Source: Octopus bimaculoides (Eukaryota). From it: a DNA stretch of 61,316 bases. The stretch is from contig NC_068982.1 in NCBI RefSeq assembly GCF_001194135.2, positions 104,462,017 to 104,523,332 of the forward strand, in the 5' to 3' direction. The translations under genes and the position numbers were made by a program. The notes beneath the pieces were generated by a model that saw nothing but the letters and a program-made list of their open reading frames with translations, searched no databases and had not been told where the DNA came from. Positions within the stretch are counted from its first letter, which is position 1; the number at the start of each line of letters is the position of its first letter. Of this stretch, positions 7,366-55,759 are shown piece after piece.

Positions 7366-7368
<3 letters not shown>

Positions 7369-7434
<66 letters not shown>

Positions 7435-7934: not shown

Positions 7935-7987
<53 letters not shown>

Positions 7988-7988
7988 T

Positions 7989-8226: not shown

Positions 8227-8258
<32 letters not shown>

Positions 8259-9562: not shown

Positions 9563-9634
9563 GGGGTTGATATAATCAACTAGTCTCCTCCAACCAAATT
9601 TCAGGCCTTGTGCCTATCGTAGAAAGGATTGTTA

Positions 9635-9694
<60 letters not shown>

Positions 9695-10840: not shown

Positions 10841-11634
10841 AGGGTGCTTTTACATGCACCCTGCAAGGGTACCAACTTGCATGATACCGGTATCTGCCAC
10901 AACTGCGATTTTGCTTGGCTTGATTTTGCACAACATAATGCCAAAGGTCTCAGCCATTGCTTCCTTGAGGCCCAACACTCAAAAGGAACTCAGCCACTTT
11001 GCCTCTGTGAAGCCCAATGATCAAAAGGTGTTCTTTACATGCCACCAGTACGGATGCACTTAGCTTGATGGTCCTCTCATCACCAAAGGTCTCGGTCACT
11101 AGTCATTGTCTCTGTGAGGCTCAAAGTTCAAAGATCATGCTTCACCACTTCATCTCATGTTTTCCTGGGTCTACCTCTACCACAGGTTCCCTCCACAGTT
11201 AAAGATTGGCACTTCTTTACACAGCTGTCCTCATCCATATGTATCACATGACCATACCAGTGCGGTTGTCTCTCTTGCACACCACATCTGATGCCTCTTA
11301 TGCCTAACTTTTCTCTTAAGTTGCTTACACTCTGTCGAACATGCACACTGACATTGCACAGTCAGCAAAGCATGCTGGCTTCATTTCTTTCAAGGCTACA
11401 CATGGCCTCGGCTGTCACAGCCCATGTTTCACTGCCATGCAGCACAGCTGTTCACATACAGGTATCAAACAATCTGCCTTTCACTCTGAGAGAGAGGCCC
11501 TTTGTTACCATCAGGGGTAGGAGCTCTCTGAACTTTGCCCATCCTAATCTCACAACTACGCTCTTGGAGCATCCGCCTCCACTACTAACTTGGTCACCTA
11601 GATAATGGAAGCTATCTGCTACATCTAGCTCCAC
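10841..11634 (-). mobile_element. 5'-truncated RTE-clade LINE (RT C-terminus and 3' UTR)
   Basis: Fragments DSFHYLGDQVSSGGGC..WAKFRELLPLM and LREKLGIRGIRC..WYGHVIHM..VEGTCGRGRPRKT. Confidence 0.85.
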
Positions 11635-11642
11635 CCCCCACC

Positions 11643-11717
11643 CCCCTTGCAGTTGATGGAATCTATTTTCTGCCCATTTTCTATGGGTAGAAAATAGACT
11701 CCATCAACTGCCAGGGG
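11643..11717. other. Compact near-perfect hairpin (~35-bp stem, 5-nt loop)
   Basis: GCAGTTGATGGAATCTATTTTCTGCCCAT-tttct-ATGGGTAGAAAATAGACTCCATCAACTGC has one G-U pair and one A-C mismatch in 29 bp, and is extended by CCCCT/AGGGG. Confidence 0.85.
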
Positions 11718-13919
11718 AGCAAGCTGAAGCTAAAGCACAAACATATCACAACAATTAATTCTGCCCAAATTCTAAGATCAAAAAGGTTAAGTTTTGCATT
11801 AATAAAAATTCCAAATTATAATTATTTGTTATTATAAGTAAAAGTCAAGCAGTTATCAATAAATTCAACTTATGACACTTGCATGAAATTAATAAATTAT
11901 TTATGCATTGATTGTTATCATTCAGTCCCAGATCAACCCTGATCATACAGACTTGTGGTCAAAAGCATTGAAGCCATAATCACCCCACACACTTTCTTTT
12001 CTTTTCTCAGAATAATAGTAATCTCTAAGACTACATTATCCAATGAGTCCTTTATTTAAAATGGTAGGGTATGATTTTAGATAGATGGTTATTTCTGGTT
12101 GGCTGACTGATCAAGTAGAGGTTCCTTCGTTGGTTCTTTGTGAATCATTGATTTTTGTGGTTGGACAAATGAAATTTTTGTCTTGTTGAATGTTATTTAT
12201 AAACAATAGATATTCTGTTACTTTTTCTAAAAAGTGGTTGAATAAAACGGAAATATATCGAATGTTATTCAGATAAGATTAATATCTAAAATCTTCTTAG
12301 TTAATCTGGTTTATAGATTTTTCAACTATTGCTCAAAAAGAAACTGATATGATGATGACAACGATGATGATGATGATGATGACTATGACGATGGTGATCT
12401 GTTAGAAAGGACTGTCTATATTCAATGTTTAGTTTATGTATTTACCCAATCAACTGTCTGGATTTCATTTCTAGTCTTAACTTTACAACGTTACAAATAA
12501 TTTTTTTTTTTTTGACATGAGAGGGAATAATAATATTTGATTACAAATAAAATAACTTCTTAATTTTATTTAAGGATCATAAGCATTAGCTCAATATCTA
12601 ACATGTCTTTTTAATTCCTATGGATATTTTAAAATTGTTTTATGATAGCCTCAAGTTATTTGATCAGAGGTATCTCCAACTCATGTCAGTCAATCAGTTA
12701 GTCAAGGATATTGTCTTATGTCTGTTGCTTAGAAATATCACCATCTTGTCAGTCAGGAGTATTGCTACTTCATGTCAGTTGGTCAAAAGTATTGCAATCA
12801 GACAACAGTCAGTCAGTGATATCTCCATCTTATATCAGCTGGTCAGACATTGCTATCTCACATCAGTCATTCAAGGATATCTTCAGCTCATATTGGATGA
12901 GGTACACATAATGTACACCAACCTGAAAACTCTGTTCCCCCTTTCCTAATATAATTCTTCATTATTATTGCCTATGATCATAACTATGGATCCAGTCAGA
13001 TGTGATGTCTGATATTGTGACTACTTTCCTGGAGATTAATTGAAAAGGACTTCATAATCAAAGTGTTTCACAATAACATCACTATCATAGCTCATGATGG
13101 GCATAAAATTTTGTAGATAATGTTGTTACTTCTTTAACATCTAGCTTTTAATTGTGAACTTTGTGATGTAGTGGAAATTTTCATTACATCACATCTACAA
13201 CACATTTTACTATTCTCAAAAGGAAGTTTTACCTTTGAGAATATAATGAATATCTTAAGTACCCATTTGTTTTCCCTTATAATGTGTGGTCACTAGAGGT
13301 TCAATGCCCAAGTAACCAATCATTTATATTATGGTGAAGTTTATTATTACAACCACAGTATATTATATACAATGGTCTCAATAAGATTTATTCTAAATAT
13401 AATATCTTCTAAATGCAGGCATGGCTATGTGGTTAAGAAGTTTACTTCCACACTAAATTGCTTCAGTTTCAGTTCTACAATTTAAGCAAGTGTCTTCTAC
13501 TAATACTACATGAAAACTGTATGTAAGTCTGTTATTTGTGTGTGGCTCTGTGAATATTGACATTCCACAGCTTGTCACTGACTGAGCAAAGCTGTGACAT
13601 ACTTGCATTCCTTATTAACATTATCACTGGTTGTTCTGTACTTTTAAAGACCAGTGGAATGAAGAAAACTCCTTTACCTGAAAAAAAATGGTTGATGATA
13701 AGACAACCTTAAGATTCTGCTTCGAATAAGTCCCCTGGCCAATCCATGTCAGCATGGCAATGCAGACATTAAACAAGCAAATGAATAACCATCATTAACC
13801 CTAATTTCTTTTAATTTATATTATTGCCTTTGAAAAAAAGACAGGACATACACTGTAAATTTGAGACTTCTATCTCTGTTAAGAATTGATATCTACATAA
13901 CATATCTTTGCCATTTCAG

Positions 13920-14010
13920 TTCTATCATCAGTGACAAACATGCCAAACAAGAAAGATAAAGCTGCCGCTAGTCCAGGATCACAAATGAAGAAAATTTCAA
14001 ACATATCAAA
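13920..14010 (+). CDS. slo: Probable slowpoke exon, RCK1-RCK2 linker (phase 1 to phase 2): LSSVTNMPNKKDKAAASPGSQMKKISNIS(K)
   Basis: Acceptor tttgccatttcAG (13918-19), donor GTAAGA (14011). The 91 nt are open only as 2+87+2, and the terminal AA joins G at 49880 to give K-PTSP in frame. I recall the same phase pattern in the vertebrate KCNMA1 linker exon. Protein similarity itself is weak. Confidence 0.62.
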
Positions 14011-16340: not shown

Positions 16341-16454
16341 ATGTATGCATACATGTATAAATATATATATATGGATGCATATGCATATGTGTATGGATAC
16401 ACTTTTACTACACTTTGATCTTAGCCAAAAGGTCAGTATATATATTGTATACAT

Positions 16455-16860
16455 AGGCGTAGGAGTGGCTGTGTGGTAAGTAGCTTGCTTACCAACCACA
16501 TGGTCCCGGGTTCAGTCCCACTGCGTGGCATCTTGGGCAAGTGTCTTCTACTATAGCCTCGGGCCGACCAAAGCCTTGTGAGTGTATTTGGTAGACGGAA
16601 ACTGAAAGAAGCCTGTCGTATATATGTATATATATATATGTGTGTGTGTGTATGTGTTTGTATGTCTGTGTTTGTCCCCCAACATCGCTTGACAACCGAT
16701 GCTGGTGTGTTCATGTCCCCGTAACTTAGCGGTTCGGCAAAAGAGACCGATAGAATAAGTACTAGGTTTCCAAAGAATAAGTCCTGGGGTCGATTTGCTC
16801 AACTAAAGGCGGTGCTCCAGCATGGCCACAGTCAAAAGACTGAAACAAGTAAAAGAGTAA
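16455..16860 (+). mobile_element. tRNA-derived SINE family A, near full-length
   Basis: Head GGCGTAGGAGTGGCTGTGTGG..GGTTCAGTCCC, internal (TA)/(TG) tract, tail GAAACAAGTAAAAGAGTA. Other copies lie at ~39398-39790 (+), ~20255-20580 (-), ~51225-51590 (-) and ~51685-52072 (-), with partials near 13410, 53640 and 56600. Confidence 0.85.
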
Positions 16861-16991
16861 TACATATACATGTGTATGTATATGCATGTTCATGTATATC
16901 TGCATACATATGTGTGCATATATATATATATATAGGATCATTTGTAAAAAACATAAATCCAAAAGAAGCACACTCTAAGATGTAGAGAAGT

Positions 16992-20228: not shown

Positions 20229-23200
20229 TAGCTTCTGTGTTGCTATCGTTTATCCATTACTTGTTTCATACTGGGGGCCTGCCTTGAAGAATTTGTAATC
20301 CAAGGAATCAACCCCAGCACTTAGTTTCTTTTAAGACTAGTACTTATTCTCTCGGTCTCTTTTCCTGAACCACTAAGTTATGTGGACACACACACCACAC
20401 ACACATGCATGCACACGCGTGTGTATACAAAAAGTTTCTTTTTGTCTCCATCTACCAAATCCACTCATAAGGCTTTGGTCAGCCTGAAGCTTTTGTAGAA
20501 GACACTTACCCAAGGTGCCATACAGTGGGACTGAACTTAAAACCATGTGGTTGTGAAGCAAACTTTATACTACACAGCTACAAATTATAGCAAAAAATAG
20601 AATAGCAAAGAAAAAATCGAATCAAGTAAGCAACTACATACAGAGGAAGTCTTACTTATTGAAGAATAATCTCTAAACAAGTATATATTTCAAAATAACA
20701 TGTGTCCACCATTAGAAATATTTTAGTATTTAAACCAGCAAATTAAAGAACAGGATTAGGGATGAGCCAATGAAGAAGCTCTTATTCAGCCCTTAAGTCC
20801 TGCTAGAAATAGCAGACAAAACATTCTAAAATCATTTTTAAAATTGTAGAACACATTGATTGATCATGTTTTTGATCTACAATCTGTGTAAACTAGGCTG
20901 ACCTTGGTCTACATGACAACATTAGGAATGAGTAAAGCTCAGAACATGATCATAATAGACCAGGTGAACATTCTTTCAAGTTATACCTTTCCATCTTAGA
21001 ACAGAATCCTAGATAGTATAAGTTCAATCCAGTGTAAATTTTTTCCTTCTCTAATTTCTCTTGCTGAATGACCATCATCTGAAATGTTGAATTCTCTGGT
21101 TTCTTTCTTGTAGTGTAAAATTAATTATCATACACTCTTATTTGTTTTTGTTATTTTTGTTCCTGAAACCTTTTGGCTTGTTCTAGATACACACAATGAT
21201 AAGGTAGTTAAGGCTGGAAAGACTTTGAGCATAATTCTGCTTGACCAGGGCTTACCTGGGACTAAATAACAACTTTGCTCTGAGGAATACAATTTTATTA
21301 ACTTAGTTATTCAGTGGAATGTAAGGGTTACATTTATAGATAAGGTGGTTATGATATTACTCTCAGCAGTGAATGATAAATATAGCCACTGATCAATAGG
21401 AAATAATTTTCAGAAATATGTAGTGTGTGACTATTTTTGCTGTTATGAGACAGTGGCTTATAGCTAAGGTTTTTGGATTGCTAACATCATCATCTTTCCT
21501 AGCCATCATGTTGTGCTCTGAAGCAAAGTATAGAACTCTATTTGCCTCAGTTAACATAACAAAGTATTTAGCATTTAGCAGCATGAAAGGTATCCAATCG
21601 TAAAAACATTTTGCTGATAATAAATCCAACAAGGGGGTTTGTGTATACTCATAAGTTAATGAGACGTCTATGAGATTGATCAACCACTCATAATAACAGT
21701 TAAGTCTCTAAACATTGTAGGGTAGGATTTGAGAAATCACACCCTGCTCTCTTAAAAAAGACAAGATGTATTTGATAATGTTCCAGATACATTGTTTGAA
21801 AATAAGAACTTGAGATGGTTACTGCTGCTTTAACTTTGATCATTGTTTTGTTTAGTTATGGCTGGCTTGTAACTACTCAAACAAAAATATCCAACCTCAC
21901 ACATCATATTTATAGAAGAATAAGGAGTGGGAATGAATCAGTAATAGAACATTAACAATAATATTTCTTTGTATTTAAATTGTAAACTGTTTGAAAGCAA
22001 GCCAGAAATACTATATTTATCTGGGAAACATGACTAGTGCACAATATGAAAAAACAAAGACAATGTGTGTCCTAAAAGCATTGACAAGATAAACTCTGAA
22101 CTTGTCAAGCCTATGCCAATATAAAAACAGAACTGACATAGATGGATGATGACACAGTGAATATTTCTTCTTTCATGTTTTAATTCTGTAGATCTGTTTA
22201 GATGTTGATGGCTATTTTATTTCTTCTTTTGTATTATTTGAACAATTTTCCAATCATACAAGCAATTACTTTTGTGGAATTGTCATCCTTGATAGAACAA
22301 ATAAGTTTTATTCTTGTTTTATATCTATTTTTATATGGAAAAATAAAGCCTAGCAAATGAGAAAGATTTAGCAGCTTTCATCACAATTTGACAGATCTCG
22401 TAATTTCTTCCATGACCTCTGTCACTGACAATACTTTCAGCTTTTTGGACTTCTACTCTGCTATGTTCTGAAGGGAATCAGACAGAATGTTAACTGACCA
22501 AATTCTTAATGCAAATATTTCTTTTAGATTCAACTTTAGCTCATAAACTTTCAATATTACATAGAACAGATATATTTTTTTAACAACATAATCCATCTGT
22601 TAGTTTTAAATATATATACATATTTACATTCTATATGCATTTTTGAATCATCAAACTTTTTTTCCTTCTTCTTTGGAATTTTGTATCTATTTTTGTTTTT
22701 GTATGGCTATTGCTGTTTGTAATTGTAAATGATGTTAGCTTTATTATTTAAAATATTTTTATATCTTTCTTGTTTCCTGTATATTTCCGTGTTGTCTATT
22801 TAATATTAACAATATTTTACCTGTCTGAATATTGTTCTTTCTTCTTCTCATATGCATTTCTTTGCTAAAATATTTGTGTTGTTCTAGTATATATATATCA
22901 GTGCTGATCTCAGTTTGAAAGATTTTGTAGTAGAGCTAACCACCATTTCATTGTCAGCTACATAGACCTGCATTTAATGTCCACTTAATCATTCTGAGAG
23001 TGGCTCAAGATGAATGATAGAATTAGACTATAATCATACTATAATTTTTGCTCAATCAAGTGTGGTAAAATAGATCTCAGAATTTTTTCTCAGTGGTAGA
23101 AAAACTGTCTTACTAACTGGTTCCAAGCATCATTATAACAGAATATTGTTTCACAAGTAGAGTATTCTTAATCACAGAAAGCACTACAAAGTTTGATATG

Positions 23201-23992: not shown

Positions 23993-26916
23993 TGTGTCTT
24001 CTATTCATTAAATGTTTGTAAGCAAACAACATATCCAGTACACCTAAACTGTACAGGTTTTGAGTTGTCTATAACCATTCTGCATGTTTTCACATACTGT
24101 CAGGGGGTTATGAAAGATGCAGAGAGGCAGTCAAATAAAATGACATTCTAATAGTGAGTGCAGTAGTTTTCATATACCAAGATGGTTGTATAGCATCCAC
24201 ATTGAGAATATTCAAGAAAAACACCAGACAGTAAAAGATGGTTTTAATTCAAATGTGTTCCACTCATTTGTTTCTGAAGATGGATATATCTTAGAGTTTG
24301 TAAGCACAAATGGAATCTATCATTATTAATCAACTATTAGATTTTAATTCAAATGTTGAATCCTTGAAGGAAATCTATTTTAAGAGAGTCCAGTTTCAGA
24401 GAGATATACATATATAATATTTTGTATAAAGGTAGATTAACTCAGTTGAATCAATGGCCATCCAATAATATGTACATTCACATGTTAAATATATGTATGT
24501 TTTGTAGCATGTTTCCGTTTCATTTACATGAAATGCAGAAGAAATAAATAACCTTCATCTCCACAGCTTCAAAGTTTGTGGCAGTATGCCAGTGGAGGCA
24601 ACTGGTACAGGTGGCAACATACTATTGTGCTGGGCAAGAAGCCATGATGTAGGGCAAACATCTGGAATGATAATTTATGGCCTGGACATGCATCAAGTTA
24701 GGTGGTGCTGCAATATCTGGTGAACCCCTCAGCCAGTTTGGCAATCTCCTGCATTCTCATACAAGCTAAGCTGTCATGACTTTATTTTGCCTCTAGGCTT
24801 CTTGTGTGAGAGCAAGAGAGTGAGTCTGATGTGCATGCAGCTCTTTCTTGCTTTAAAGAAACCTTGCACTACTCAAACGTCTGCATCTAGTGAATAAAAT
24901 TGTGTGGCACATACTTGACAGACCACCAACTAAATATCAAATAGTTTTGTTGTTGAGGTTGTACTGTTCCACACACTTTCCACATTAAAATACCACCACT
25001 TCCATAGTTTTAGGCACAAGAAAGGTATGGTGTAGGTGGGAGTAGTTGTGGTTTTCTGCTCCCCATCACACACACACACACAACTGCATCTCTTGTTAAA
25101 GTACCATACAGCTAGCCATGGTCTTCATTGATCATCAATGGCTGAAGCCATTTGGAGTCACAGATGGTAGACCTTTCATTGAAGCAGTGGAAGAATCACA
25201 CTTTTGTGACAAATACTGCTACCTCCTTAACTTTTTAGCTTTAGATGTGTGAAAGGTGGAGTATATTTAGGAGTTGTTGTAGTTCTCTGGTCTCTTGCAC
25301 GATGCATCCCAGCTGAGGTTCTGTGCAGCTGAAGTCATTTTCTTCAGTGATCACCAATAGACATATCTTAAAATATTAGATATTTTTGTTTCCTTCTTTA
25401 TTTCTTTCTTCATTATTTTATTTATTAATTAAATTTTGGCAGTTACTTGATCATTGCCAAATCTTATGGATGAACCATTATATATATGTGTACATATATA
25501 TCACACATACATACTTACATATATACATGTGTGTGTGTAAATTAAAAGTAAAAGATTTTAAAATACAAGCAATAACTTCCAAGTTGAAGTAAAAAAAAAT
25601 TAATAGCCAAATAGATCAGGTTGACACAAGATACATCCAGTTTAAGGGTGTCAGGTTATGACTATATTAAGCAATAAAAAAATTTTAAACTACATTGATA
25701 ATAAGTTCAAGGTTATTTGGGTTACAGCCCGATTGAGGTAGTTAAAGTAGACCATAAGGTTCCATAAGAGGAGTTATTGTCAAGGTTTAACAAAGATGAT
25801 GAACTTCAAGTATAGATTTATAGTGTGAAACAAATATATATGTGATAAATAGATACCAACAACAATACACAAGAATAGTTACCAATATACAAACACTCTG
25901 CTGCAGATTTATCGACACCCATAACACACTTGCACAGAGAATACAACTGACTGTATACTTACAATTAGACACCTAATGTATACACAAATATACATTATAT
26001 AACCCAGTATATAAAATATATAAATAAACAAGCAAATAATGCATACACACATGCATAACTGATATGATGATAGCAGGTGACTCAATTATACAAAACTTAA
26101 TTGAAACAATGACAGTTATTCGATATCTCGCAAAACTACTCTGAATTACTCTATCCACTTACTCCACTTACTAAATTAAAAAATACTACAACAATACCGT
26201 GAGCTCATAATAATATGAGATACAATACATTATTTTGTTGATAATATGTTATCAGTATCAATAAGTAAAAATGCTGTAATATTAATGATATGCAAACTAA
26301 ACAATGGTTAAAATAATACTCATAGTAGCAACAGATCATCATTCTAGCATTTGTTCAAATTAACATTGGACATGCTTGGAATAAAAGAGAATTTATACAG
26401 GTTAAAAAGTATGTATGTTCAGCTAATATATTTTAGGTGTAGATAAAATCACTTAGGTTATTTATACTAGTATTTATGTGACAGTCATTTGAATTGTAAT
26501 ATGAAAACATATTGTTTGTAGGTCCATTTATGGTACCATCACCCTTCACATGCCTGATTTAGTATAAATCACTTAGTTCATGATACTTGGAATTAGATTT
26601 AAAAAAGGAAGAGCAACAAGAAAGAGAAAAAAGGACATCAGGAATGACATGTTTTGACATATATTCTCATATGTATGTTATGTGTGTGTGTGTACATGCA
26701 CTCGTGAGTGTATACATTATTTGTATATATTATATAATATATNNNNNNNNNNNNNNNNNNNNNNNNNNNNNNNNNNNNNNNNNNNNNNNNNNNNNNNNNN
26801 NNNNNNNNNNNNNNNNNNNNNNNNNNNNNNNNNNNNNNNNNNNNNNNNNNNNNNNNNNNNNNNNNNNNNNNNNNNNNNNNNNNNNNNNNNNNNNNNNNNN
26901 NNNNNNNNNNNNNNNN

Positions 26917-27787
26917 CTGCCTGGAATAAAACTCGGAATCTTGGGGTTAGTAGCCCACGCTCTTAACCACTATGCCATATGCCTGTGGGCAATTATGGAG
27001 TGAATTTTAGGGCTTATAAATCTAACATTTTCCTATCCTTCCTTAATACCGGTTCCCATATGCTATTCATATCTGTACTCGGTCTGCTTAGGGGGTTGTT
27101 GTGTCCTAGCATATGTGCTGTTTCTTTTAGTTTTCGTATTTTCCAGTGGTGTTCTCTGTCTATTATTTTAACTTCATCCACAGGGGGAGGTGGTCTCCAT
27201 TTTTCCATGCATGATCAGCTATACCCGATTTATCAATATCTCCTTGTGTCACAGCTTTGCAATGTTCCAGTACCCTTATTTTGAGGGGGTGATATGTTTC
27301 ACCTTTGTATAAATCAGGTATAGCTGATCATGTATGGAAAAATGGAGACCACCTCCCCCTGTAGGATGAAGTTAAAATAATAGACAGAGAACACCACTGG
27401 AAAATATGAAAACCAAAAGAAACAGTACATATGCTAGGACACAACAACCTCTTAAGCAGACCGAGTGCAGATATGAATAGCATATAGGAACCGGTATTAA
27501 GGAAGGATAGGAAAAATGTTAGATTTATAAGCCCAAAAATTCACTCCATAATTGTCCACAGGCATATGGTGTAGTGTTTAAGAGCGTGGGCTACTAACCC
27601 CAAGATTCCAAGTTCAATTCCAGGCAGTTACATGAATAATAATAATAATAACATCGAAAAATACCTTAGGAATGAAAACCCATTCAAACCTGATGAAGGC
27701 TGGAAGGTATATCAGCCAAAACATTGTGTTGACAACAAACAAGATGAGGACATATCCATCAAATGTAAATAATGTACATAATTCATC
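26917..27787. mobile_element. Penelope-like element fragments, head-to-head inverted pair (GIY-YIG C-terminus, tRNA-like head, (AAT)n, degenerate hammerhead)
   Basis: The minus arm translates with one frameshift as YKGETYHPLKIRVLEHCKAVTQGDIDKSGIADHAWKNGDHLPLWDEVKIIDREHHWKIRKLKETAHMLGHNNPLSRPS..., the YIGET..R..EH..S..A.H..W..V.I..E..R..E pattern of PLE GIY-YIG endonucleases. Arms 26917-27233 and 27309-27627 are inverted copies. Confidence 0.85.
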
Positions 27788-27809
27788 ATCTCTGAGTGGT
27801 TGACTACAC

Positions 27810-27970
27810 TCTCTGAGTGGTTGGCGTTAGGAAGGGCATCCAGCTGTAGAAACTCTGCCAAATCAGACTGGAGCCTGGTGTTGCCATCCGGTTTCACCAG
27901 TCCTCAGTCAAATCGTCCAACCCATGCTAGCATGGAAAGCGGACGTTAAACGATGATGATGATGATGATG
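27810..27970 (+). mobile_element. Short RTE-3'-end repeat ending in (GAT)n
   Basis: Reads GAGTGGTTGGCGTTAGGAAGGGCATCCAGC..CCCATGCTAGCATGGAAAGCGGACGTTAAACGATGATG. Similar copies at ~3960-4160 (+), 10427-10600 (-), 38850-39017 (-) and ~42380-42540 (+). Confidence 0.75.
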
Positions 27971-28399
27971 ATATATATATATATATATATATACATATCT
28001 CTTTTTTTTTTTACTCTTTATATATGTATGTTGTATATATATATATGTGTGTGTGTATGTTGTACANNNNNNNNNNATATATATATATATATATTATTTA
28101 TCTATACTTATATGTATGTACATATTGTGTGTGTGTGTGTGTTTGTATGCACTTATTATTAATTATATATTTACCTATATATGTGTGTATCCATGCATAT
28201 ATATCAAGGTATTAATGCAATACAGCCATTTCAGGTGGCTCCATCTTCAGTTGCAAAAATATAGATTTTCAACAGACAGGATATTCTATTATAATTTTTA
28301 GCAAATATTTCATCAGAGCTAGAGAATGAAAGAATGGAATTCTTTCAATGTCCAGCTTCTACAAAATATTTACTAAAAATTATAACAGAATTAATTCTG

Positions 28400-30800
28400 A
28401 CTGTGAAAAAAGTGTTTCTGCAAATCATGGATACTGTGTTGGTTTTTGATATTATTAGCATGTCTACTAGTGATAGAGATATTGAATTCAAAAAGATTAC
28501 CAAAGTTGTTGGATTTCTATCAACTCGGCTAAACATCGAATCTTTAGAGTGTTAATGTTCAGAGAGCCAATACATTCAAGTTATGGTAAGTGACATGACA
28601 GAAGGTATTCATCTGGTTGCACATCTCTGATCAACTTCTATTAGATCAGTATTTTGGACAAGGTGAAATTTCCAGACTTGACAAAACTGTGAGTGTGGAC
28701 ATGCCATAGCCATATAATGCTTTAAATACATAGCTTAGATTGCTGGTGAGTGTTTGACAAAGGTTTTACTGAGTGATGCTAAGAAACCTTCTGTGATTTT
28801 GAAGATTTTAGAAGTGTGATTCATTTGGCACAAATCATTGTTGACAATAATGCTGAAGTCACATTTACCAGCAGATTGCTTTAAAGTTAGTGTTACGGAG
28901 GGAGTAGGTAAATTCTAGCTTTTCATTCCCAAAATGTATAGTGCTGCACTTTTCTACAACTAGTTTGAGTTGCCAATCCATTGCTATATTGTATCCTGAT
29001 CAGATTGCAGGAAAGATCTATTGTCTTAAGATCTGTTCTTTTTCTCTTAAGATACAGCATAATGTCATCTGTGTATCTTAACTGAGTAACATGTTTCAAG
29101 TCAGCATCTATTTCATTAATGTATGCACAGATAACAGGAAACCAAGAACAGATTCCTGTGAGCCACCAGATGTCATTCCATAATGTGCAAAATGTTGTTC
29201 TAGTACAGTAACTACCTCTTTTCAACCAATAATTTCGGACTTCAGTCCATTGCAGAAAGCTTCACCATAAGCTGTTTGTGTGGTGTTGAATTAAAGGCTT
29301 TGGTGAAATGAAAATAGATAACATACTTCCATGAGCTGTCATCTGTTGTTCAGATGTCTTCAAGAAATTCGTTGAGTTGGCCACAGCAGATTGAATTAGA
29401 GATAAATCAAAATTGTGAGAAATAAATAAAGTTACAAGAATTCCAGTGATTCAAGTGTCATTCTGATACAGGATTCCATTAATTTCGCAATACAGATTGT
29501 GAGACTGATTGGATGGTAATTGACAATTGATGTGTAGTAACCTTTTTTGAACCAGTGGATAATATTGGCAATTTTCCACTGTTCTTGGGTAACAAAATTA
29601 CTTGAAAAAGTAAAGAAAGCTGGTGAGCAGGAAGTGCCTGCTGTATTTGAAAAGTAGATAAGTAACACTGTCAAAAATATGACATTTAAGTTGGCATCAC
29701 AACATTGCAGGAGTAAATTCTACAGATATTAAGGAATTTGACTTCCATAGCAGTGAAGAGGGTACATTTGAATTTTCAACAATAAAAATGCCAGCATAAC
29801 ATTCAGCAACAAGTTTTGCATGCTCTTTAAGTTCATCAGTAACCTAACTTATATAGGGATTGCAAAGAGAGCTACTGAAGAATGAGGACTCTGTTTTGTA
29901 TGCACATACTCCCAGCACAGTTTACTCTCTGGGTTGGTTGCTATGTGTTCTTCAAATTGAAGAACCTTTTAGTCACTTGATATGATTGGACATACTTTGC
30001 ATCTTTATTATCTCCTGTTTGAAAACCTGTATTTATGTTCAGCATCCACTCACTCTTTCCTGGCAAAACAGACCACTGCAATCTCCCGTATTACACTTTT
30101 GGGAGATTCTAATGTATTTACATAGTACTGATGCTTTGCATGCAGCCCAGCCCAGACTGAAATAAAGAATGTATTGAAGGATAGAACCGACATCTGGAAT
30201 CATAAAATACAAACCAGTTTGGACACTGTAACTCAGTACAACAGGAATTCTAGTCACCTTTGTTCCAGACAAAATGAGTAATTTGGAGATGATGATGGCT
30301 TTTCTTTCTGTCCATAAGAGACAGATTGGCAATAGTTATAGCAAGTTTTGAGTCATTTAAAAGTTTCTTGAATAGAAATGAATAGCTGATCCAAAGTGTT
30401 GTTACCTTTTGTAGGGATCATGACTAAATGGGACCAGTTTGAATCTAACACTCAATCAAAGAAATTTGCTCTTTCTCAGCTGTGAAAAGTTTCCCAGTCA
30501 ATTTCTAGGTAATCAAAATCACCAATGATGAAAAGATAGGTAACTGATTTCATAGATGCAGCTCTGAGTTGTGTGCCTTTATTGTAGTTTAGGTGACAGT
30601 AAGCAACTCCAAGTTGAAATGTTGATGTGCTCATATGAATGTCACAGAAAATCACTTCTTGTTGCATAGGCTTCACATCATCACAAGAAATTGCTGACAA
30701 GTTTGAGTGAACATAGACCATCACACCACTCCATGGCAATTAGAACAGTCTTTGCAAAACCAGCTGAAGCCAGCCATGCTAAAACTATAACTTTGTTCTT
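28400..30800 (-). mobile_element. Decayed CR1-clade LINE (APE endonuclease plus RT fragments)
   Basis: ORF pieces GVMVYVH...FIIGDFDYLEIDW (APE), WKIANI..FKKG..NYHPISLTICIAKLMES and YTDDIMLY (RT). Boundaries are approximate. Confidence 0.8.
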
Positions 30801-31824: not shown

Positions 31825-31920
31825 GTAATTATTTCAAGTTACTCATAAATAGAAAAAGTATATACATATATACATCCCTGCATGCCATGTTACATTAGAG
31901 GTCGGTTTTCTGTGTTACAG

Positions 31921-32010
31921 CTACTCGAAAATTCTGGAAGATGTCGAGGAAGGTGATGATAGAATGCTGGCAATTTCTGAACAGCCACCTAAGGGATCAC
32001 GGCTAGCGAT
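31921..32010 (+). CDS. slo: Candidate slowpoke cassette exon, 90 nt, phase 2-2: (N)YSKILEDVEEGDDRMLAISEQPPKGSRLA(M)
   Basis: Acceptor ttttctgtgttacAG, donor AT/GTAATT. Length is a multiple of 3 and it is open in the frame required by the flanking exons. It is CpG-containing and coding-like amid microsatellites. Confidence 0.55.
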
Positions 32011-32677
32011 GTAATTAATTTCAGCTTAATGTTTATGCTGCATCTTCTACCTCATTTTTTTCCTTCTTTTTTTTTATCCAAACCACACCCACCAATTTAC
32101 TTTCACTTTTGTATGTGTGTGTGCGTATGTGTTCTTTTTACTTTTTAAAGTTTTCTTCTTCTTCTTCTTCTTCTTCTTCTTGAATTCCATTCTTTCAGCC
32201 TGCAATGATATGTATGTTTTATGAATATTGCTGTCTGCAGATCAGCATCTGGCCTTGGACAATAGTACTTAAAATATATATATATATGCTTTGAAGATTT
32301 TTGCTCTTCTCTTTTCCTTTCCAATAGCTATTTATGTTTTTTGTGTGTTTTTTTTTTTTCTCTTTCTTTTAGTATGAAGCCTTACAATCAAGGCTGCTTA
32401 GGTGTGGAGCATTTCTTAAAGAATATTCTTGTTATATGATTGTATCATTACCCTTCCTCCAATATAAATCTAACTCCTTTCTATCTAACATATATATATT
32501 TATAGATATATCTATCTACAGACTTAGTCTGAAAGTTTTATATCTCAGATAGATTGCTTTTAGAGTTACTAGGTACTAGAGTGGCCTGTTGGGAAAAAAA
32601 CTAATCTGTGAGTTCTTAACTATTTTAAAGTGTTACTTAACTGCACTGCTTCTATTTGCCTACTCAACTATGCATGA

Positions 32678-37463: not shown

Positions 37464-37499
37464 GAAATTACCTTCTTTCTGGCAACTAAATCCTTCTCA
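37464..37499 (+). CDS. slo: Candidate slowpoke microexon, 36 nt, phase 2-2: (K)KLPSFWQLNPS(Q)
   Basis: Acceptor attctttacatttcAG (37462-63), donor CA/GTAAGC (37500). The 1+33+2 nt are open in the required frame. Confidence 0.5.
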
Positions 37500-40400
37500 G
37501 TAAGCCATAAGATATTTCATGTTTTGTTTCTTTTATTTCTATATCAATATTTCCTTTTTTTTTCACCTGATAACTTTATGTTGTGTACTTTTACTTTTAT
37601 ATCCACTTTAACTTCAGTTTATTGTTTCAAACATTACTTGCTTACATCAAAGATAAAGCACCAAAAGAAAATCAACAATATAATTCTCTAAAAATATATC
37701 AAGTTATTTGTTTCTTGAAAGACCATTTCAGATTCTGACCTCATGTCAACTTACATACATCTAAAGCAACCAACAGTGATTCTTATTTTGTTTTGTTCTT
37801 TTTTTAAAACCTTGTTTCTTAACCCTACCTAGCCTGCCTTATCTTCCATAAATTCATCACTGATATCAAGTTATTTTCAACGTTTTTCTTTTTAGGCGCA
37901 GACATTGTTCTTGTGCTATAATCTTTGACAAACACTTAGAATTGTTTCATATTTTTACAAATGAACACCAACGTTTTATAATACTTGAAAACTGTTAGCA
38001 CAAATTCTAATATAAGATTCCTGGGAGGAAAAACTAAATTTCTATCCACTAACCTTAAAGAAGTTAGACATTTTCTCAGCTGCATATTTTTCTCAGACAA
38101 TCAATTTACAAACAAACCTTGTACTTTTGTACTTGACTAAATCCCTTAGTATAATTAGCTGTTCAGACTAGGTGCCAGACAGATAGCTCAAGACAGATAG
38201 GTGCCAGACAGATAGCCAACTGGCAGGATACCTAGGGATAGAATGACATGGTTGGATAATATCCATTGTTCCAGTTGGTCATGCTTGGGAATCCAACTAG
38301 AAAGTGTTATGATGTTGCTTCTGATAGAAAGTATCTGAAGACTCAACCCATATAACCCTCCCAGGAATAGTGGGTGGAAAAGATGGATAGATGAGATGGA
38401 TGTAACAAAGAACTTTCACTTTGATCTTTCAAACTTCTGTGGATCAACAAAATAAGTGCCATTTGAATACTGGTTTCAATCTAATTAACTTAACTAGCCT
38501 CACAATTTGAGCCTTTGTGCCTATGTCAGAAATCATTAAATGCCATACGCATAAACTTGCATCTCTTCTAAAATACTTTTTCAATGCATGAGCCAGCCAA
38601 GGAAGTTCTACATGGTCACTTGATCTGTTAGAAACAACTAAATTCACTCAAATCTCATCCTATGAGCTTAACAAAGGAAGGACACATTAGACAAAATAGT
38701 CATATGTGTTTGTACACAAAAGATCAAAAGGATACATAGCTGGAATGCCTTTGATCATAGTTTGCTCAATCAAGGTTGATCTGGGGCTACACATCAATAC
38801 ACATGCTAGGCTAGAAGAGCAAATATCAACAAGTAATATTTCAGGTGTTAATCATCATCATCGTTTAACATCCGCTTTCCATGCTAGCATGGGTTGGACG
38901 ATTTGACTGAGGACTGGTGTTCCAGATGGCTACACCAGGCTCCAATCTGATTTGGCAGAGTTTCTACAGCTGGATGCCCTTCCTAATGCCAACCACTCCG
39001 AGAGTGTAGTGGGTGCTTAAATTAGGAATTCTATAAGTATCACTTGGTGTGTTGGAAATTTTCTGTTGCGTTATCCATAAAAGGCTGGTACTTTGTCCAG
39101 GATGAGATTTATCTTTCAAATGCTTAATGCTACAGAAACTAGAGTATAGCACTGGTCAAATTATCCCCTAAGGTTGATGAAATAGTTAACTTTGATTTCA
39201 GAAAGAATTTTAACCCTGGTCCTAATAATTTTTATAAAAAGGTCAATCTTAAAAACTTACAATGAATGTAACCTTGTTGCCTTTCCTGTTCTTATACAGT
39301 GAAAAATCAATAATAATTCTGGTGATTCAGTATTTTAAAAGCAACCACAGTTGAAATTAGAAGATAGACAATTATTTTTCTTAATTTTATTCACATAAGA
39401 CACAGGCATAGCTGTGTGGTAAGAAGTTTGCTTCTCAACTGCATAGTTTCAGGTTCAGTCCCTTTGCATGGCACCTTGGGCAAGTGCCTCAGGCGTACCA
39501 AAGCCTTGTGAGTGGATTTGGTCAGCTGACACTGAAAGAAGCCTGCCATATGTATGTGTTTGTGTGTGTGCCTTTGTGTCTTTGTTTGTTCCTCCACTAC
39601 CACATGACAACTGACATTGGTGTGTTTACACACCCATAACTTAGCAGTTCAGTAAAAGAAATCAATAGAATAAGTATCAGGCTTTAAAAAATAAGTAAGT
39701 ACTAGGGTTGATTCATTCAACTAAAATTCAAGGCAGTGCCCCAGCATGACCACAGTTTAATGGCTAAAACAAGTAAAAGAAAAAAAGAATAATCCTAGCT
39801 TTATTGTAGAAAATAGAATAGTATTACAGTTTGTTTGAAGAATTTTGGAATAGAAAAACTATGACTTGGATAGCTACAGCAATGCAGTTGAGAAGAAATT
39901 AAATATGAATAGATGCAAAACTTTAAAATTTTATCTCAAATCTTTATATCATTACTCCTCAGCTGAAAGTCTCTAATCATAGATGAAAAGAAATAAACTA
40001 ACACATTGCTGCTTCACTTTTCACCCGTGACTAGAAATATTTGTTGGTTGAGCTATCAAAATTATTAAATGATTTAGGATAAAAGTTTTTTGTTATTCTT
40101 GTATTTAATTTATTCTCAACTACATTGCTCTGGTTTTCTTAATCAGTTTTTCTCTAAACAATAGTTCCTTGAGATTTATGTTCCATTTTTATTTCACCCC
40201 AAAATTCCATGCTTCTTGTTCTATGGCTCATATGCCTAGTAAAGCCAAATTGCTGTAACTAATGTATGACTTGCAGCTGTTAAGGTTTAAACAGAGGCTT
40301 CCTAATAATATTTGCTACAGTAATCTGATTGTGGCATGTATGTTATTGTTGAATTCACTTTATACAAGAGTATTTTTTTAGTTTTTTTTACCTCTTCCGT

Positions 40401-43400: not shown

Positions 43401-45297
43401 TGAGTTTTGGGGGGTTGTTTTTATAGACCAACAAAAATGAAGATAATCTGACTGAAGAATAAATTGAAATTTATGAGCCAACAATTTTATACAGATTTAA
43501 ACTCACTTGACACATCTTTAAATGTTTGTGCCACTGATCTTGCCTATTCAGATAGAAATCTGATCTTACAAAATTACTTTTGTGAAATCCTATAAATACC
43601 GTCTTAATGTTTCTTTTATATAGATGTGATATCAATATTGGTTTTAAATTTAGGCTCAAGGCCAGCAATTTTGTGGGACAGTAAGCTGATTTCATCAGCC
43701 ACAATTCTCAACTGGTACTTATTTTTTTATCGACTCTGAGAGGACGAAAAGCAAAGTCAACCCTGGCAGCATTTGAACTCAGAATGTAATGTATGAAGAA
43801 ATGCCATTAAGCATTCTGTATGGCATAGTAACAATTCTACCAACTCACCATCTTATGTGATATTAATATTGAAATAAGGTAAAAGGCAGTGAGCTGGCAG
43901 AATTGTTAACACCCTGGACAAAATGCTAAGTGGCATTTTGTCTGTCTTTACATTCTGAGTTCAAATGCCACTAGGATCAACTCTGTCTTTCAACCCTTCA
44001 GGGTTGGTAAAATAAGTACCAGCAGAGTACTGAGATCAATGTAATTGACTTACCCCTTCCTTGAAATTGCTGGCCTTGTGTCAAAATTTGTAATCAATAT
44101 TAAAATAAGTTCAAAGGCAATGAGATGGCGGAATCATTAGTGTGCCAAGCAAAATGCTTATTGACATTTCATCCATCTTTACATTCTGAGTTCAAATTCT
44201 GCCAAGGTTGACTTTGCCTTTCATCCTATCAAGGTCAATAAAATAAGTACCAGTTGAGCACTATGGTCCATATAATTGGCTTATTCTGTCCCCTGAATGT
44301 GCCAAAATTTGAAACCAGTATTAATATAAGGTCAGGAAAATTAGAGTTTATGAAATTCATGCACTTCTTAAGGGTATTAGTTCTGTAAATATATCAGTTC
44401 TACCTGAAAATTGAATCATTAGCTGAATAATAAACATTATATTCAATTTAAGCTATCAGTTGTGGAATTGGCATTTTTTAATGTAATATTCCATATTTCA
44501 TTTAAGCACCAATGTTATGTGTGAGAGTGAGTGGAGAGAGAGGGAGGTAAGCAGAGAGGAAGTTGATGACAAAACAGCATGAATTGAAAAATTTGGTTTG
44601 ATTTTAAAATTCCTTTGCATTCCTTGTAATATAGCAAGTGAAAATAACATAAATTTCTTTATAGAAAAACATGTTAGTTAACTACTCTGAAATAACTGAC
44701 AGAAATCATTTTGTTAATCTGAAGGTGAGGAAGTTATTCAATTATGCAAAAACATTAAAGTTTTAACACTTCAAGAAATCAAAAATGAAAAATAAATTAA
44801 ATGATTTTTATCTTTTGCTTCAAGGCATACAAAAAAAGACAATAAAATAATGTAATGAAGCCACAAGAAACAATACAATAAAATAAAGTTTCTAAGTAGT
44901 CACTCTACTTAAAAAGAAGCATAAACACAATATAAAAATATGTATTGCTTGGAAGTATTGCTGTTCTAAAGAAGTGCTTTCTGTTTGATGTTGGAAGACC
45001 TGAAGAAACTGTTTCTTATTCTACTTGTTTGCTTCTGCACTGTATATACAAACCTGAAAATATAAATAATATTGATAATAATCATTGTCATCATCATAGG
45101 TTTGGTAGCTGTTTTGTGGTGCTAGCTTGGAAAAAAATAGGAATTTTCTGTTCTGTTGAGCAACAAATAATTAAAGGTAATAAACTCCTATTTAGGTTAT
45201 TCCTGATAATGGTTCCTTAGATATGAAGATATGACTACATAAAACATTTGACAAGAAGAGCATATTGTAAAAGATTGAAAAGAGTAGAGTAAGATTA

Positions 45298-47409: not shown

Positions 47410-49879
47410 TTATAGTTGCTGAACTTGCCATAGGTTAAGTAATTGTCTCAAATTTTGGCACAAGGTCAGAATTTTTAAGAGAGGGAGTGAGGGAGTAAGT
47501 TGATTACATTACCTCCAGTGTTCAACTGGTACTTATTTTATTGACCCTGGAAAGATGAAAGTCAAAGTCAAGCACAGCAGAATTGAAGGTTAAATAATGA
47601 TAGTAATATTAATGTGTATCTAGAAAACTTTTAGATCAACTATTTTATAGAGTTCAAAAGTAATTAAAATATGGCACATCAGAAGGTTTTATTTGTATGT
47701 ACCCAATAGTAAGCATCCGTCAGTCTTGAGAGACCATGGATCTGCAACCGGAGAAATTGAGTCAGCTGCTGTGGCTGTAGAGGCCCACACAGGAGTGACA
47801 GTCATGAATACAGTGACTGCATTTGAAGTTTTCTACTGGTTACATAAAATGTTACATAAAATAAATTAACACATTCTTTTAACACTACTCTTATTTGAAA
47901 CTTCATGGATAGAATGATACAACAAATATTACTGGCACAAATAAGATATTTGTTATTGTTCTAAAAGTGGTTATTTTGATAAATCATCTCTTAATAATAA
48001 AAAATTCTTTAAAGGTCTTTTGAGTTGATATCAATCTTTTTCCATCATATTTCTTCTTAGTATTTCTAAAGTAGCCAATATAAACTGTTCAATGAAATAG
48101 TAAACATGAGTGCTAAAGTATTAAAACAAAATACCATCTTCACTTTATTTATACTCTAAACACTTTCTCAAACAAACATTTTCAATTGTATTTGAAAGTG
48201 TTTAAATCTGCATGATTTTCCTGTTTATCTTGAAATTCTTGTAAAATTCAAAACTATTATAAAACATAGTATTTTTACTTTTGTAATATAGGTGAGGAAT
48301 GAATAATACATATTTCTGTTGAATTCATTTAATTTTGTGTAACATGACCTATTTCTTTCAGATGAAGATTCCCTTTCCAATGTTTTTGTTTTCAGCTCTG
48401 AGAATGAAGAACTTCTTAGAATGATTTGATATTTTTATTTAAGATTTTGTTTCCATATATGCTTATCCAAATGATTTGATTAACAGTGCATTTAGTTGAA
48501 AAATGATTACTAGTTTTGTGCATCTGTTAAAGAGTTGAAATTTTATCAAATTGATAAATGAAATCTTTATCCAAAATCCCTTTCTAAATTCAACTTAATT
48601 TTATGCTTCACTCCAAAATTTTGTATGTCCTTAACTAATACATAAAATTATATCATTCAACCTTAAACATAGTATAAAGGTGTTCTAATTAATTACCTTA
48701 AAATTCAAAATAGTAATGCCAAGTGTTGTACATGACTCTTCACAATTTTAAAAAAGATAATTTTTATAGTATTTTCACTCAAATAAATTCTAGTATTTTT
48801 TCAAGTAAATATTTTTTAAATTCTTTCAGTTAAAAGTTTTATCGTAGCTTTATTTTTTTAATTTTTATTATTAGACCTGTATAGTGACTTAATGCAAAGT
48901 TATTTGATTCATTATAATGGAAACTCCATCCAATATCCCTGATAACTATGGAAGCAATGTTTGCAGTAACAGATGTTCTGTAACAATTTCATTGATTCAC
49001 TATACTTGTAGATATCATAGTATGGCTTAGGAAAGTAATTTAATCAGGTAAGATAGTAAGAAAAAAATAAAGAGGTCCTTGAAGATAGGCTAATCTTTTT
49101 ATAATTGATTTATTTTCTGGACATTTAACACTTATGTATGGAAGCTTGTATATTCATATTAAGATACTCTGTTGAGTTTAGTTCATGCTAGTGTCTCTCT
49201 TAGTGCAAAAGATCAAAGGGAAGTTATTAAGTATAATATAATAGAAGAGCAGATGGCAAAAAACAGCATCACATAATAATATGAAAGTAGAGCAAGGTTG
49301 AAACAAAGAAATGATCCTGACATTAATTTATTGAGTGTTGTAGCTCGTTGTGCATCAGCCTTCATATTCTAAATACATTAATACACAGAACTTCCTTCAT
49401 AAAAGAAACAATTTAAAAGAGAGCATCATATAGTTTACAAAAGCAATCCCTAATGAGGATGACAAGAAGGATGAATATACATATGTATAACTAAAACATG
49501 ACTGAGATCTCTAAAACTGTAAAATAAAATTTTAAAAGAGTTAAACAAGTGATTGCATATAAAATAGATCTATCTTACTTTGTCTCCCCACCTCTCTTCC
49601 TCTCTCTCAAACACACACACACTCATATAAAATGCCAAAGAGAGAACTTAATACTTAAATTCTGGCAGAAATTATGATATTCTGGTCTGTTTGAATATAA
49701 ATAATCACTATTAAGTATCACATACATCAACAGGGATCTTTAATCTCTTTATATCTCCGTTATTTAATAAATATGGTCTACATCAATTGCTAAACAGAAT
49801 TTCTTATTTTTTATGTTTTTATATTTTTATTTATATCTGAATTATACATTTTCTTCTTTCTGTTTGGTTTTGTCACCAG

Positions 49880-50042
49880 GCCCACCAGTCCATCTAAAGG
49901 AACTTTACAAGCTTTAGACAAAGGAAACTCTGCCAATTTACCCCCTGATATGAATGTTGTGCCTGGAGAGGAACCTCGAAAATTTGATTCGACAGGAATG
50001 TTCCACTGGTGTCCAGAACGGTGTATTGAAGATGTTCTTATG
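49880..50042 (+). CDS. slo: slowpoke exon (phase 2-0): [54 protein letters not shown]
   Basis: Carries the [11 protein letters not shown] hallmark of Slo1 at the start of RCK2. Acceptor ttttgtcaccAG, donor ATG/GTAAAC, 163 nt. Confidence 0.95.
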
Positions 50043-51422
50043 GTAAACTATAGAGATTCCTTGGATTATTGTTGCTTTCTGTATTAGTTACATATCAACT
50101 ATTACAAACATTTTTTTTTAAATGTACCACTTGCACAAAAAGCGAAAATTTAGCACAAAACAATGCACAAACACAGAACAACCACAAACACCACATCTAA
50201 TCAAACTATTGAAGCAACAAAACTATTGTAGAAATATTATTATTATAATCTCTCATGAACTTTTAATCTCCCCAAAAACTATAAGGAATATGAACTAACA
50301 AATTCAATGTGCATATTTGAACTGTTGGAAGTAGCAACCAAATCTTTCTCAAATTACATTCTGTCATCTTGAAGAGGAGGAACATGTTGGATAATGTTAT
50401 TTTAACTATCCGTGGCCTAAAGAAAAGAGGAAGTGGCTATGGGTGGAATGCATATATTTATACTTTTGCCTTGCTATGGCTGACATGGGCTAACAACAAA
50501 GTACACAAAATAGTACATTTCTCAATTACACCATCTATATACAGTCTGCATTTATACTCATGTGATGATCAGTTTCTTTTTTACTACATGCTGTCAGACT
50601 CAAGCAAGCCAGCACTTCTACAGGATCCCAGAACTCTATCCTAACAACATGATCCCACTCATTCAATCCAGAGAAACTTAAAAAATACATGCAATAATAA
50701 CAGCAGGAGCAGTATCAGTAAACTTGTTAGCTCTAACAAGTTTACCATAGTGGCATGCTGACCACCTCATGAACACACATACACATGATTATCAAATGTC
50801 AAGCCTACATCTGATGTAGCTGCAGTCAGGCATAAAAACAAACTGAAGAGTGAAATGAAAGAGCAAATTGCCTCACTTCTCTCAATACAATAAAGTGCTC
50901 CATATCAAAGTGCACAGCATGGTCCTCAGTTGTGCAGAACCATGATATTTATGCAGCAGTGATTGTAAACAAGTTATAGCAAACAAAATCTAGGACTTAC
51001 AATTTCTGCTAATGCATTAAAGTTTATAAGAAATTGGAAGGCCTGGAATTAACAGAATATGATGGTTTTTAGCTGTGTGTTGTTCATGAATAAACCAATT
51101 GCAAAGAAGGATAAGAAAACCAATTACAAAAAAGCTATGGTAGTTGAAGTCATATGAGAGTTACACCTTATGAGATTTTTGCAAAAGGATTCAGTAAGCC
51201 TTATCTAAAAATTATTTTTTATCATTCACTTGTTTCAATCATTCAACTGTGGCCATGCTGAGGCATTACCTTGAAAGTTTTAGTCAAACAAATCAAACCT
51301 GGTATTTGTTTTTTAAAGTGTGGTACTTTATCTATCATTCTCTTTAGCCAAACTGACAAATTTCAGGGACTTAACCAAGTCAACATTAGTTGTCAATCAT
51401 TGTGGATGGGGACAAACACAAA

Positions 51423-51464
<42 letters not shown>

Positions 51465-52165
51465 TTAAATTTCCAAACAATTTCCATATACCAAATTCAC
51501 CCAGAAGGCATTGGGCAGCCCATGGTTATAGATACTTACCTAAGATGCCATGCAGTGGACTGAACCTGAAGCCACACAGCCATGCCTGCACCTTGTTGAC
51601 AATATCCAAATTGTTTTTGTACACATCTAGTCCTTGCTAGCTTTGAAAAGCAGTTGAAAAAATAAATTAATCTTTTAACTTTTTTATCTTTTACTTGTTT
51701 CAATCATTTGACTACAGCCATGCTGGAGCACCACTTTGAATGGTTTTAGTCAAACAAATTGACCCCAAGATTTATTTTAAACCTAGTACTTATTCTATTG
51801 GTCTCTTTTGCCTAACCATTAAGTTACAGGCATATAAGCACACCAACACCAGTTGTCAAGTTGTGATAGGGGACAAATACACACACACACACACACACAT
51901 ATATGTATGACAAATTTCTTTCAGTTTCCGTCTACCTAATCCACTAACAAGGCTTTGGTCAGTTCGTGACTGTAGTAGAAAACATTTGCCCAAGGTGCCA
52001 CAGTGTGGGACTGAACCTGGAACCATGTGGTTGGGAAGCAAGCTTCTTACCACACAGCCACATCTGCACCTATTAATAATTTCATCAAAGAATTTTTAGA
52101 AATCCAATATGTTTCTCACAAAATTAATATCATAAAAATAAAGATGACTATATTTCTCTTTTCAG

Positions 52166-52390
52166 GATCGAAATCAAGCAGCACTAACTGTACTGTGTAA
52201 CCATGTTGTTGTGTGCTTATTTGCCGAAGCATCATCTCCGCTCATTGGTTTGAGGAATTTAGTCATGCCATTACGAGCAAGTAATTTTCACTACCATGAA
52301 CTCAAACATGTAGTTGTTGTTGGAGATCTTGAATATCTCTGTAGAGAATGGAAAATGCTTCAGAACTTTCCAAAAATATCAATATTACCA
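52166..52390 (+). CDS. slo: slowpoke exon, RCK2 (phase 0-0): [75 protein letters not shown]
   Basis: [23 protein letters not shown] is diagnostic of Slo1. Acceptor ctcttttcAG, donor GTAAGT, 225 nt. Confidence 0.98.
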
Positions 52391-53009
52391 GTAAGTATTT
52401 AGTTAATAATCATTTGTTAATGTGTGTATACTAAGAGTAGCTACTAACTACAGGGAAAATAAAAATACTTAAGTACTGTCCATCTGAAGATTTCAGACAG
52501 TTAGTACTTACTTTAATATATTAATATGACATTGTTATGAGTAATAATGGTTTCTATCACAGGCAAAACACTACTAATTTTAGAAACAATAGTCTATTGA
52601 ATTGACCCCAGTAATTGATATTTATTTTGTCAAACCCTTGAAGATTGACAGGCAAAGTTGAGCTCAGCAGGATTTCAACTCAGAATGTAAGAGAAATTAC
52701 TACAGTTGTTGCCCTTGTAACAAATTTTAAAATTATTAGTAGTATTATAGTTATTGTCTTTATTATGTAATCAGTGAACTTAAAGAGCTCTCCAATGCCT
52801 AATTTTCTCTAATGATTTGTTTGTAATATTTCCCTTACTTCAAGCAAGAGTTGTAATCAATTCTTATGTAGCAGAATAGATTTATGTGTATATCAGAAAA
52901 CAAATGTTATATATGTAATAATAATGATATAAATTGCATTTATTCTCATGTCTTATTTGGTTTTCTTCTCTCTATTGCCATTTGTGATTTTGTGCTTCTC
53001 TTTCCACAG

Positions 53010-53205
53010 GGCTCTCCTCTAAACAGAGCTAACTTACGTGCAGTAAATATTAATCTGTGTGATATGTGTGTGGTTCTATCAGCCAAAGATAAAAACTTAG
53101 ACGATCAGCATCTTGTAGATAAGGAGGCCATCCTCTGCTCACTCAATATCAAAGCTATGACATTTGATGATAGTATTGGCCTTATACAAGCTTCAGCCCC
53201 AACAG
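53010..53205 (+). CDS. slo: slowpoke exon, RCK2 (phase 0-1): [65 protein letters not shown](G)
   Basis: Matches Slo1 [20 protein letters not shown]...[18 protein letters not shown]. Acceptor ctctttccacAG, donor G/GTAGTT, 196 nt. Confidence 0.97.

Positions 53206-55555: not shown

Positions 55556-55759
<204 letters not shown>

Follow-up and report, generated by a model that had tools for sequence, protein, structure and literature searches.

The window analyzed here is a 61,316-nucleotide stretch of Octopus bimaculoides DNA whose host gene, judged by sequence similarity, is a BK/Slo1 channel: the spliced translation matches Aplysia BK (5tj6 and others; E = 6e-48), and the downstream exons are 50-95% identical to human BK (against a human probe). 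The exons and the other features discussed below are collected in Table 1. The exon starting at 49880 encodes the start of RCK2, so the intron directly upstream of it, in which a candidate exon lies, interrupts the RCK1-RCK2 linker. The initial annotation had placed the candidate in this linker, and the placement holds: the flanking exons match BK, and the candidate lies between them, within the Slo1 intron and on the coding strand. The downstream exon is conserved in genomic open reading frames (ORFs) of other species, and its phase-2 start is kept in another species' locus. The same intron contains a 36-nt micro-exon candidate at 37464, possibly another cassette. A weak tblastn match to it (EKLSSFWPLEP, E = 0.028) was seen in L003, one of the other-species loci described below, and its conservation there was dropped, the splice sites and phase being unmatched. 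Among the accepted exons, the RCK2 exon at 58510-58680 stands apart in its CpG content (7 CpGs, observed/expected 0.98, versus 0.23-0.52 in the other exons).

Table 1. Coordinates of exons, splice signals, repeats and other features in the window (PWM, position weight matrix; splice borders are marked by a slash)
Feature	Position	Strand	Details
Assembly gaps (N runs)	235-244, 572-581, 3280-3295, 8814-9258, 26743-26916, 28067-28076		The two long runs are 445 and 174 nt
Interspersed repeats	7948-10600, 16453-16866, 20306-20581, 26917-28003, 38849-39780, 43667-44276, 51213-52073, 61003-61316		Families with 2-5 window copies each, 70-94% identity
Upstream linker exon	13920..14010	+	Encodes ..LSSVTNMPNKKDKAAASPGSQMKKISNIS + AA; ends phase 2; splice sites cag/TTC, AAA/gtaaga
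Decayed LINE-like remnant, broken ORFs	28923-30739	-	Endonuclease-like ..GVMVYVHSNL..IIGDFDY and RT-like ..YTDDIML motifs
TGCATG, Rbfox-type hexamer	31879..31884	+	37-42 nt 5' of the 3' splice site
Possible branch point gttAc	31888..31892	+	About 30 nt 5' of the AG; putative, 4/5 match to yUnAy
3' splice site, pyrimidine-rich tract	31900..31920	+	ggtcggttttctgtgttacAG; crude PWM +4.2 bits
Candidate cassette exon	31921..32010	+	Phase 2-2; encodes (N)YSKILEDVEEGDDRMLAISEQPPKGSRLA(M)
Internal competing donor	31953..31958	+	AAG/GTGATG; PWM +3.45 bits
Weak 5' splice site	32011..32019	+	GAT/GTAATTAAT; T at -1, T at +5; PWM -1.4 bits
Pyrimidine-rich stretch downstream of donor	32041..32100	+	Purine fraction 0.10 in 32041-32070
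(TTC)n	32153-32181	+	3' of the pyrimidine-rich stretch
Micro-exon candidate	37464..37499	+	(K)KLPSFWQLNPS(Q); 36 nt, phase 2-2; splice sites ttcag/G, TCA/gtaagc
GC-richer unique island	47690-47851		2 kb upstream of exon 49880
Downstream constitutive exon	49880..50042	+	Encodes ..PTSPSK...; starts phase 2; start of RCK2
Exons matching human BK	52169-52390; 53001-53198; 57344-57592; 58504-58683	+	Human BK probe
Calcium bowl exon	55580-55705	+	Match to human BK probe

The candidate is flanked by an AG at 31919-20 and a GT at 32011-12, and the letters around its borders read ...ggtcggttttctgtgttacAG/CTACTCG...GCTAGCGAT/GTaattaat. Its length is a multiple of three (90 nt) and its phase matches that of the flanking exons. 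A single forward frame is open, starting at 31922, with stops in both other forward frames; splicing of the exon that ends at 14010 to the exon starts at 37464 or 49880 (both of which are G) requires precisely this frame. The description of a symmetric 90-nt exon open in the needed frame is thus borne out at these exact coordinates, the AG/GT borders and the translation being in agreement. Translation of the insert, with AA supplied by the exon that ends at 14010 and G by the exon that follows, gives the peptide NYSKILEDVEEGDDRMLAISEQPPKGSRLAM, which remains in frame whether or not the 36-nt exon is spliced in. Seven of the peptide's residues are acidic and four basic, for a net charge of -3; it has an EDVEEGDD cluster and no Cys, and its inclusion would convert the junction Lys to Asn. 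Six GAR triplets make the candidate purine-rich and enhancer-like, and a TAA stop overlaps its donor.

The two splice sites of the candidate differ in quality, as scored with generic matrices rather than ones trained on Octopus bimaculoides, so that all scores are crude. The acceptor, at +4.2 bits, is preceded by a pyrimidine-rich run (ggtcggttttctgtgttacag) and is the sole positive-scoring AG within 31839-31985. The donor scores -1.4 bits: a G at -1 or +5 is present in all eight accepted donors of the window and at neither position here. The RCK2 exon ending at 58680 has the same nine intronic bases (GTAATTAAT) as the candidate donor, but after CAG. In addition, a GT at 31953 within the candidate is stronger than the donor at its end and, if used, would yield a 32-nt exon and a frameshift; neither the weak donor nor this internal GT was part of the earlier reading. 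The pyrimidine-rich stretch downstream of the donor could conceivably be a binding region of the PTB/TIA type.

A good acceptor followed by an internal donor that outscores the frame-preserving one (3.45 bits versus -1.4 bits) is compatible with a splice-competent but mainly non-productive element, which would use the donor at 31953 or be included only rarely and noisily, as a 'poison' exon that regulates dosage or as splicing noise, instead of contributing a peptide. We regard this as improbable, because all 90 nt are open in exactly the required frame and because the CpG and GC signal (described below) reaches 32010 rather than ending at 31952, with two of the four CpGs located past the internal donor.

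An Rbfox-type hexamer just upstream of the candidate had been put forward as a sign of regulated splicing. The TGCATG is indeed present at the position claimed, and the argument built on it is weak: the window contains 53 copies, compared with 47 +/- 8 expected after shuffling. Rbfox bound upstream of an exon usually represses inclusion, enhancing sites being usually downstream, and the next forward-strand TGCATG downstream of the candidate is at 32671. Because its density is at chance level and it lies upstream of the exon, we do not count this motif as evidence of regulation.

We evaluated how readily the intron would produce such an exon by chance. Throughout intron 14011-49879 (36 kb), we counted the intervals of 30-300 nt that run from an AG to a GT, are divisible by three in length and are open in the required phase. 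The AT-rich sequence offers 1,044 such pseudo-exons, and the candidate could in principle be one of them, that is, unspliced and functionless unique DNA of the intron in which AG, GT and open frame occur together by accident. The poor donor and the stronger internal GT are in keeping with such an origin, as are the choice of this stretch after the fact and the absence of external support in the collections searched (which are without cephalopod BK). Only four of the 1,044 intervals, the candidate included, equal or exceed the candidate's scores at both splice sites, and of these four the candidate alone contains more than one CpG.

CpG retention is the strongest internal evidence for the exon. 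The initial annotation had pointed to several CpGs in CpG-poor surroundings, and this is confirmed: the candidate has four, with an observed/expected ratio of 0.85 (versus 0.08-0.17 in the nearby intron); the ratios of the real exons extend from 0.23 to 0.98 and so take in this value. The non-repeat intron carries 0.28 CpG per 90 nt, from which the Poisson probability of a 90-nt window with four or more CpGs is 2e-4 each, and approximately 0.075 such windows are expected in the whole non-repeat intron. Apart from the candidate, none of 30,881 non-repeat 90-nt windows of the intron contains at least four CpGs, and 16 contain three. The expectation of about 0.075 CpG clusters, taken together with the four intervals that have good splice scores, puts the coincidence required of a chance pseudo-exon on the order of 1e-3. 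Moreover, a step in GC content coincides with the splice sites: GC is 0.47 in the candidate and 0.30 in both flanks, with a sharp drop at the donor (for the eight accepted exons, GC is 0.35-0.44 versus 0.12-0.35 in their flanks). Such a joint occurrence being improbable, we consider a pseudo-exon that arose by chance unlikely. Taken together, the splice signals, the frame, the length, the step in GC and the retained CpGs resemble an exon more than chance would explain.

The candidate obtains 8.8 bits per 90 nt from a codon-position composition score that was trained on the exons of the window; the seven real exon segments obtain 2.9-8.65, and the candidate ranks among the highest 1.2% of open windows in the intron. 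Approximately 20 other islands on the forward strand of the intron reach at least 7, which favors a chance pseudo-exon, and the numbers on the minus strand are similar. Because so many other islands and the minus strand score alike, this score is mostly a GC detector and adds little. The intron's top coding-like score belongs to the unique, GC-richer island upstream of exon 49880 (17.8 bits per 90 nt on the forward strand and 15.3 on the minus strand), which has a 58-amino-acid forward ORF and an in-phase AG at 47708-09 and no good phase-compatible donor.

Three of the four candidate CpGs could be lost by synonymous change, so constraint on the protein alone fails to explain their survival, which would instead fit a sequence that is young or one that is constrained as RNA. 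Retention at synonymous positions also fits protection from methylation, as in a short regulatory element of the intron that is non-coding, bound by protein and unmethylated. Such an element would leave unexplained the bracketing AG and GT, the single in-phase open frame and the length divisible by three, and no RNA family or structure signal accompanies the candidate; we give this explanation very little weight. A hidden RNA gene is unlikely too, because there is no Rfam match in the window and no unusual fold (z-scores of 0.2 and 0.6, both strands having been folded).

Youth of the sequence brings in a different explanation, in which the candidate is a low-copy or recent insert (a transposon or a retroposed piece) whose CpGs have not yet decayed and which resembles an exon by accident. 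Across the whole window, the 90-nt stretches with at least four CpGs fall into nine clusters. Six of these are interspersed repeats with other window copies at 70-94% identity; the remaining three are the real exon at 58504-58680, a cluster at 8369-8461 (also with repeat copies) and the candidate. That six of the eight other clusters are interspersed repeats speaks for insertion, as do the microsatellites that flank the candidate island, the decayed minus-strand LINE-like remnant approximately 1.2 kb away, a 12-nt imperfect direct repeat (ATGTAATTATTT / ATGTAATTAATT) that brackets 31835-32008, and the three CpGs that the protein code does not protect. On the other hand, the candidate has no second copy in the 61-kb window, whereas the recognized repeat clusters all have several, and neither the 1.84 billion protein representatives searched nor Pfam contains a match to it. 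It is also without terminal inverted repeats, a poly-A tail or a tRNA-like head, and its CpGs and rise in GC do not extend over a longer element but are limited to the 90 nt of the open frame and 17 nt more. On balance, insertion of a mobile or retroposed piece appears distinctly unlikely.

Several specific forms of repeat origin were considered and set aside. The 12-nt repeat was rejected as a target-site duplication, because an AT-rich match of 11/12 occurs at about chance frequency and no element termini are found. A tRNA-derived SINE was rejected because ARAGORN found none. The candidate is unlikely to be part of the LINE-like remnant (whose Pfam RVT_1 match, at E = 0.034, is below the cut-off), since more than 1 kb and microsatellites lie between them and no minus-strand ORF crosses the candidate.

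The interspersed repeats of the window contain 1.0 CpG per 90 nt, as opposed to 0.28 in the unique intron, and explain nearly all of its non-exon CpG clusters. Both of the long assembly gaps adjoin repeat copies.

Searches beyond the window found no relative of the insert and no spliced transcript with it, in collections that lack cephalopod sequences. The 31-amino-acid peptide had no match among 1.84 billion protein representatives or in a word-indexed protein collection (all of them collections without cephalopod BK), nor in Pfam, and no DNA or peptide-pattern match was found in JGI metagenome contigs, GTDB genomes or IMG/VR (which are without cephalopod genomes). Neither Aplysia BK nor Drosophila isoform J BK (PDB) aligned to the insert, the alignments beginning within the insert or past it and showing no real similarity. 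A composite query of upstream exon, insert and downstream exon retrieved nine short genomic ORFs from non-octopod species, all covering the downstream exon only (44-72% identity over the aligned parts), and brought up neither flanking exon from an octopod; because the same query missed even these exons, the failure to find a homologue of the insert says little. Five loci (L001-L005) reached through the downstream exon are from distant species, and two of them have introns of less than 1 kb. In three distant loci, no insert-like sequence was seen in the sequence of up to 10 kb upstream of the orthologous exon (5.5 kb in L001). In the literature, we found neither a paper on cephalopod BK splicing nor any text containing the candidate peptide.

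One of these loci has an unusual structure of its own. In L001 (ENA ERZ21930238, contig ctg24992l), a 131-bp unit is repeated approximately 50 times head to tail, with 98% identity, at 5550-12160. Each unit carries two-thirds of the orthologous linker/RCK2 exon, from its 3' side, together with its GT donor. The array follows the complete exon and precedes the next exon of RCK2; it may be either a true satellite made of exon fragments or an artefact of assembly.

We propose that 31921-32010 is a genuine, frame-preserving cassette exon of BK/Slo1, probably a regulated one, and assign this reading a probability of about 0.5. That the candidate itself is spliced is something we infer from the letters of the window. 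It would be spliced in after the exon that ends at 14010 and ahead of the one that starts at 49880, whether or not the 36-nt exon is also used, and its inclusion would add 30 mostly acidic residues to the disordered RCK1-RCK2 linker. The weak donor and the purine-rich exon make regulated inclusion more probable than constitutive inclusion. By analogy with other BK inserts, the added residues would change channel gating or its regulation, through electrostatics, phosphorylation or the binding of partners and not through membrane anchoring; the specific suggestion that the insert tunes calcium and voltage gating draws on analogy only. The candidate may already exist in automated gene models, and its description as unannotated and cephalopod-specific in the initial annotation is unsupported.

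A more far-reaching version of this proposal is that the insert is an acidic cassette, undescribed to date and restricted to the octopod or coleoid lineage, that arose at the ancient site-2 position independently of STREX, generating a BK isoform with altered calcium and voltage gating or regulation in cephalopod neurons or muscle; this we regard as doubtful. BK channels determine the shape of spikes, the rate of firing and the release of transmitter. If the cassette is genuine, then it offers a simple, testable isoform pair, with and without the insert. It would change no concept, given that alternative cassettes are expected in the RCK1-RCK2 linker.

The intron that contains the candidate, immediately before the exon with a conserved linker/RCK2 motif, is presumably at the position of vertebrate splice site 2 (the STREX site). 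Mammalian site 2 occurs with no insert, with IYF, with STREX1/2 or with a 28-amino-acid exon (PMC3840924), and its inserts lie in the disordered RCK1-RCK2 linker (PMC4122160). At this place in the linker, vertebrate inserts move the voltage of activation by tens of millivolts and switch how the channel responds to kinases (PMC4122160, PMC3840924). The KCNMA1 site-2 exons are optional in-frame cassettes of the linker, as the candidate would be, and at 30 amino acids the candidate is close in length to the 28-amino-acid mammalian variant. STREX itself is 59-61 amino acids long and Cys-rich, with a palmitoylated Cys-Cys pair, a polybasic stretch and a PKA serine (PMC4122160), and its use is proven by cDNA and electrophysiology. 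The candidate has no sequence similarity to STREX and is shorter (30 amino acids), net acidic and Cys-free, so its likeness to the STREX family is one of insertion site only. Anchoring to the membrane by S-acylation is ruled out, because the peptide has no Cys.

The slowpoke genes (Drosophila slo and Caenorhabditis elegans slo-1) belong to the same family and also vary the cytosolic domain by means of alternative exons. Many of the Drosophila slo sites are mutually exclusive exon pairs, whereas the candidate has no paralogous copy in the window, and we rejected the possibility that it is the duplicate of a mutually exclusive exon. Its nearest structural counterpart at the locus, the 36-nt exon at 37464-37499, is in the same intron and is likewise phase 2-2 and frame-preserving, but is shorter and has no CpG, no rise in GC and a better donor (TCA/GTAAGC). 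Together, the two would make this a multi-cassette intron, like mammalian site 2. If the candidate is real, cephalopods too would diversify BK at the linker position, with a chemically different insert.
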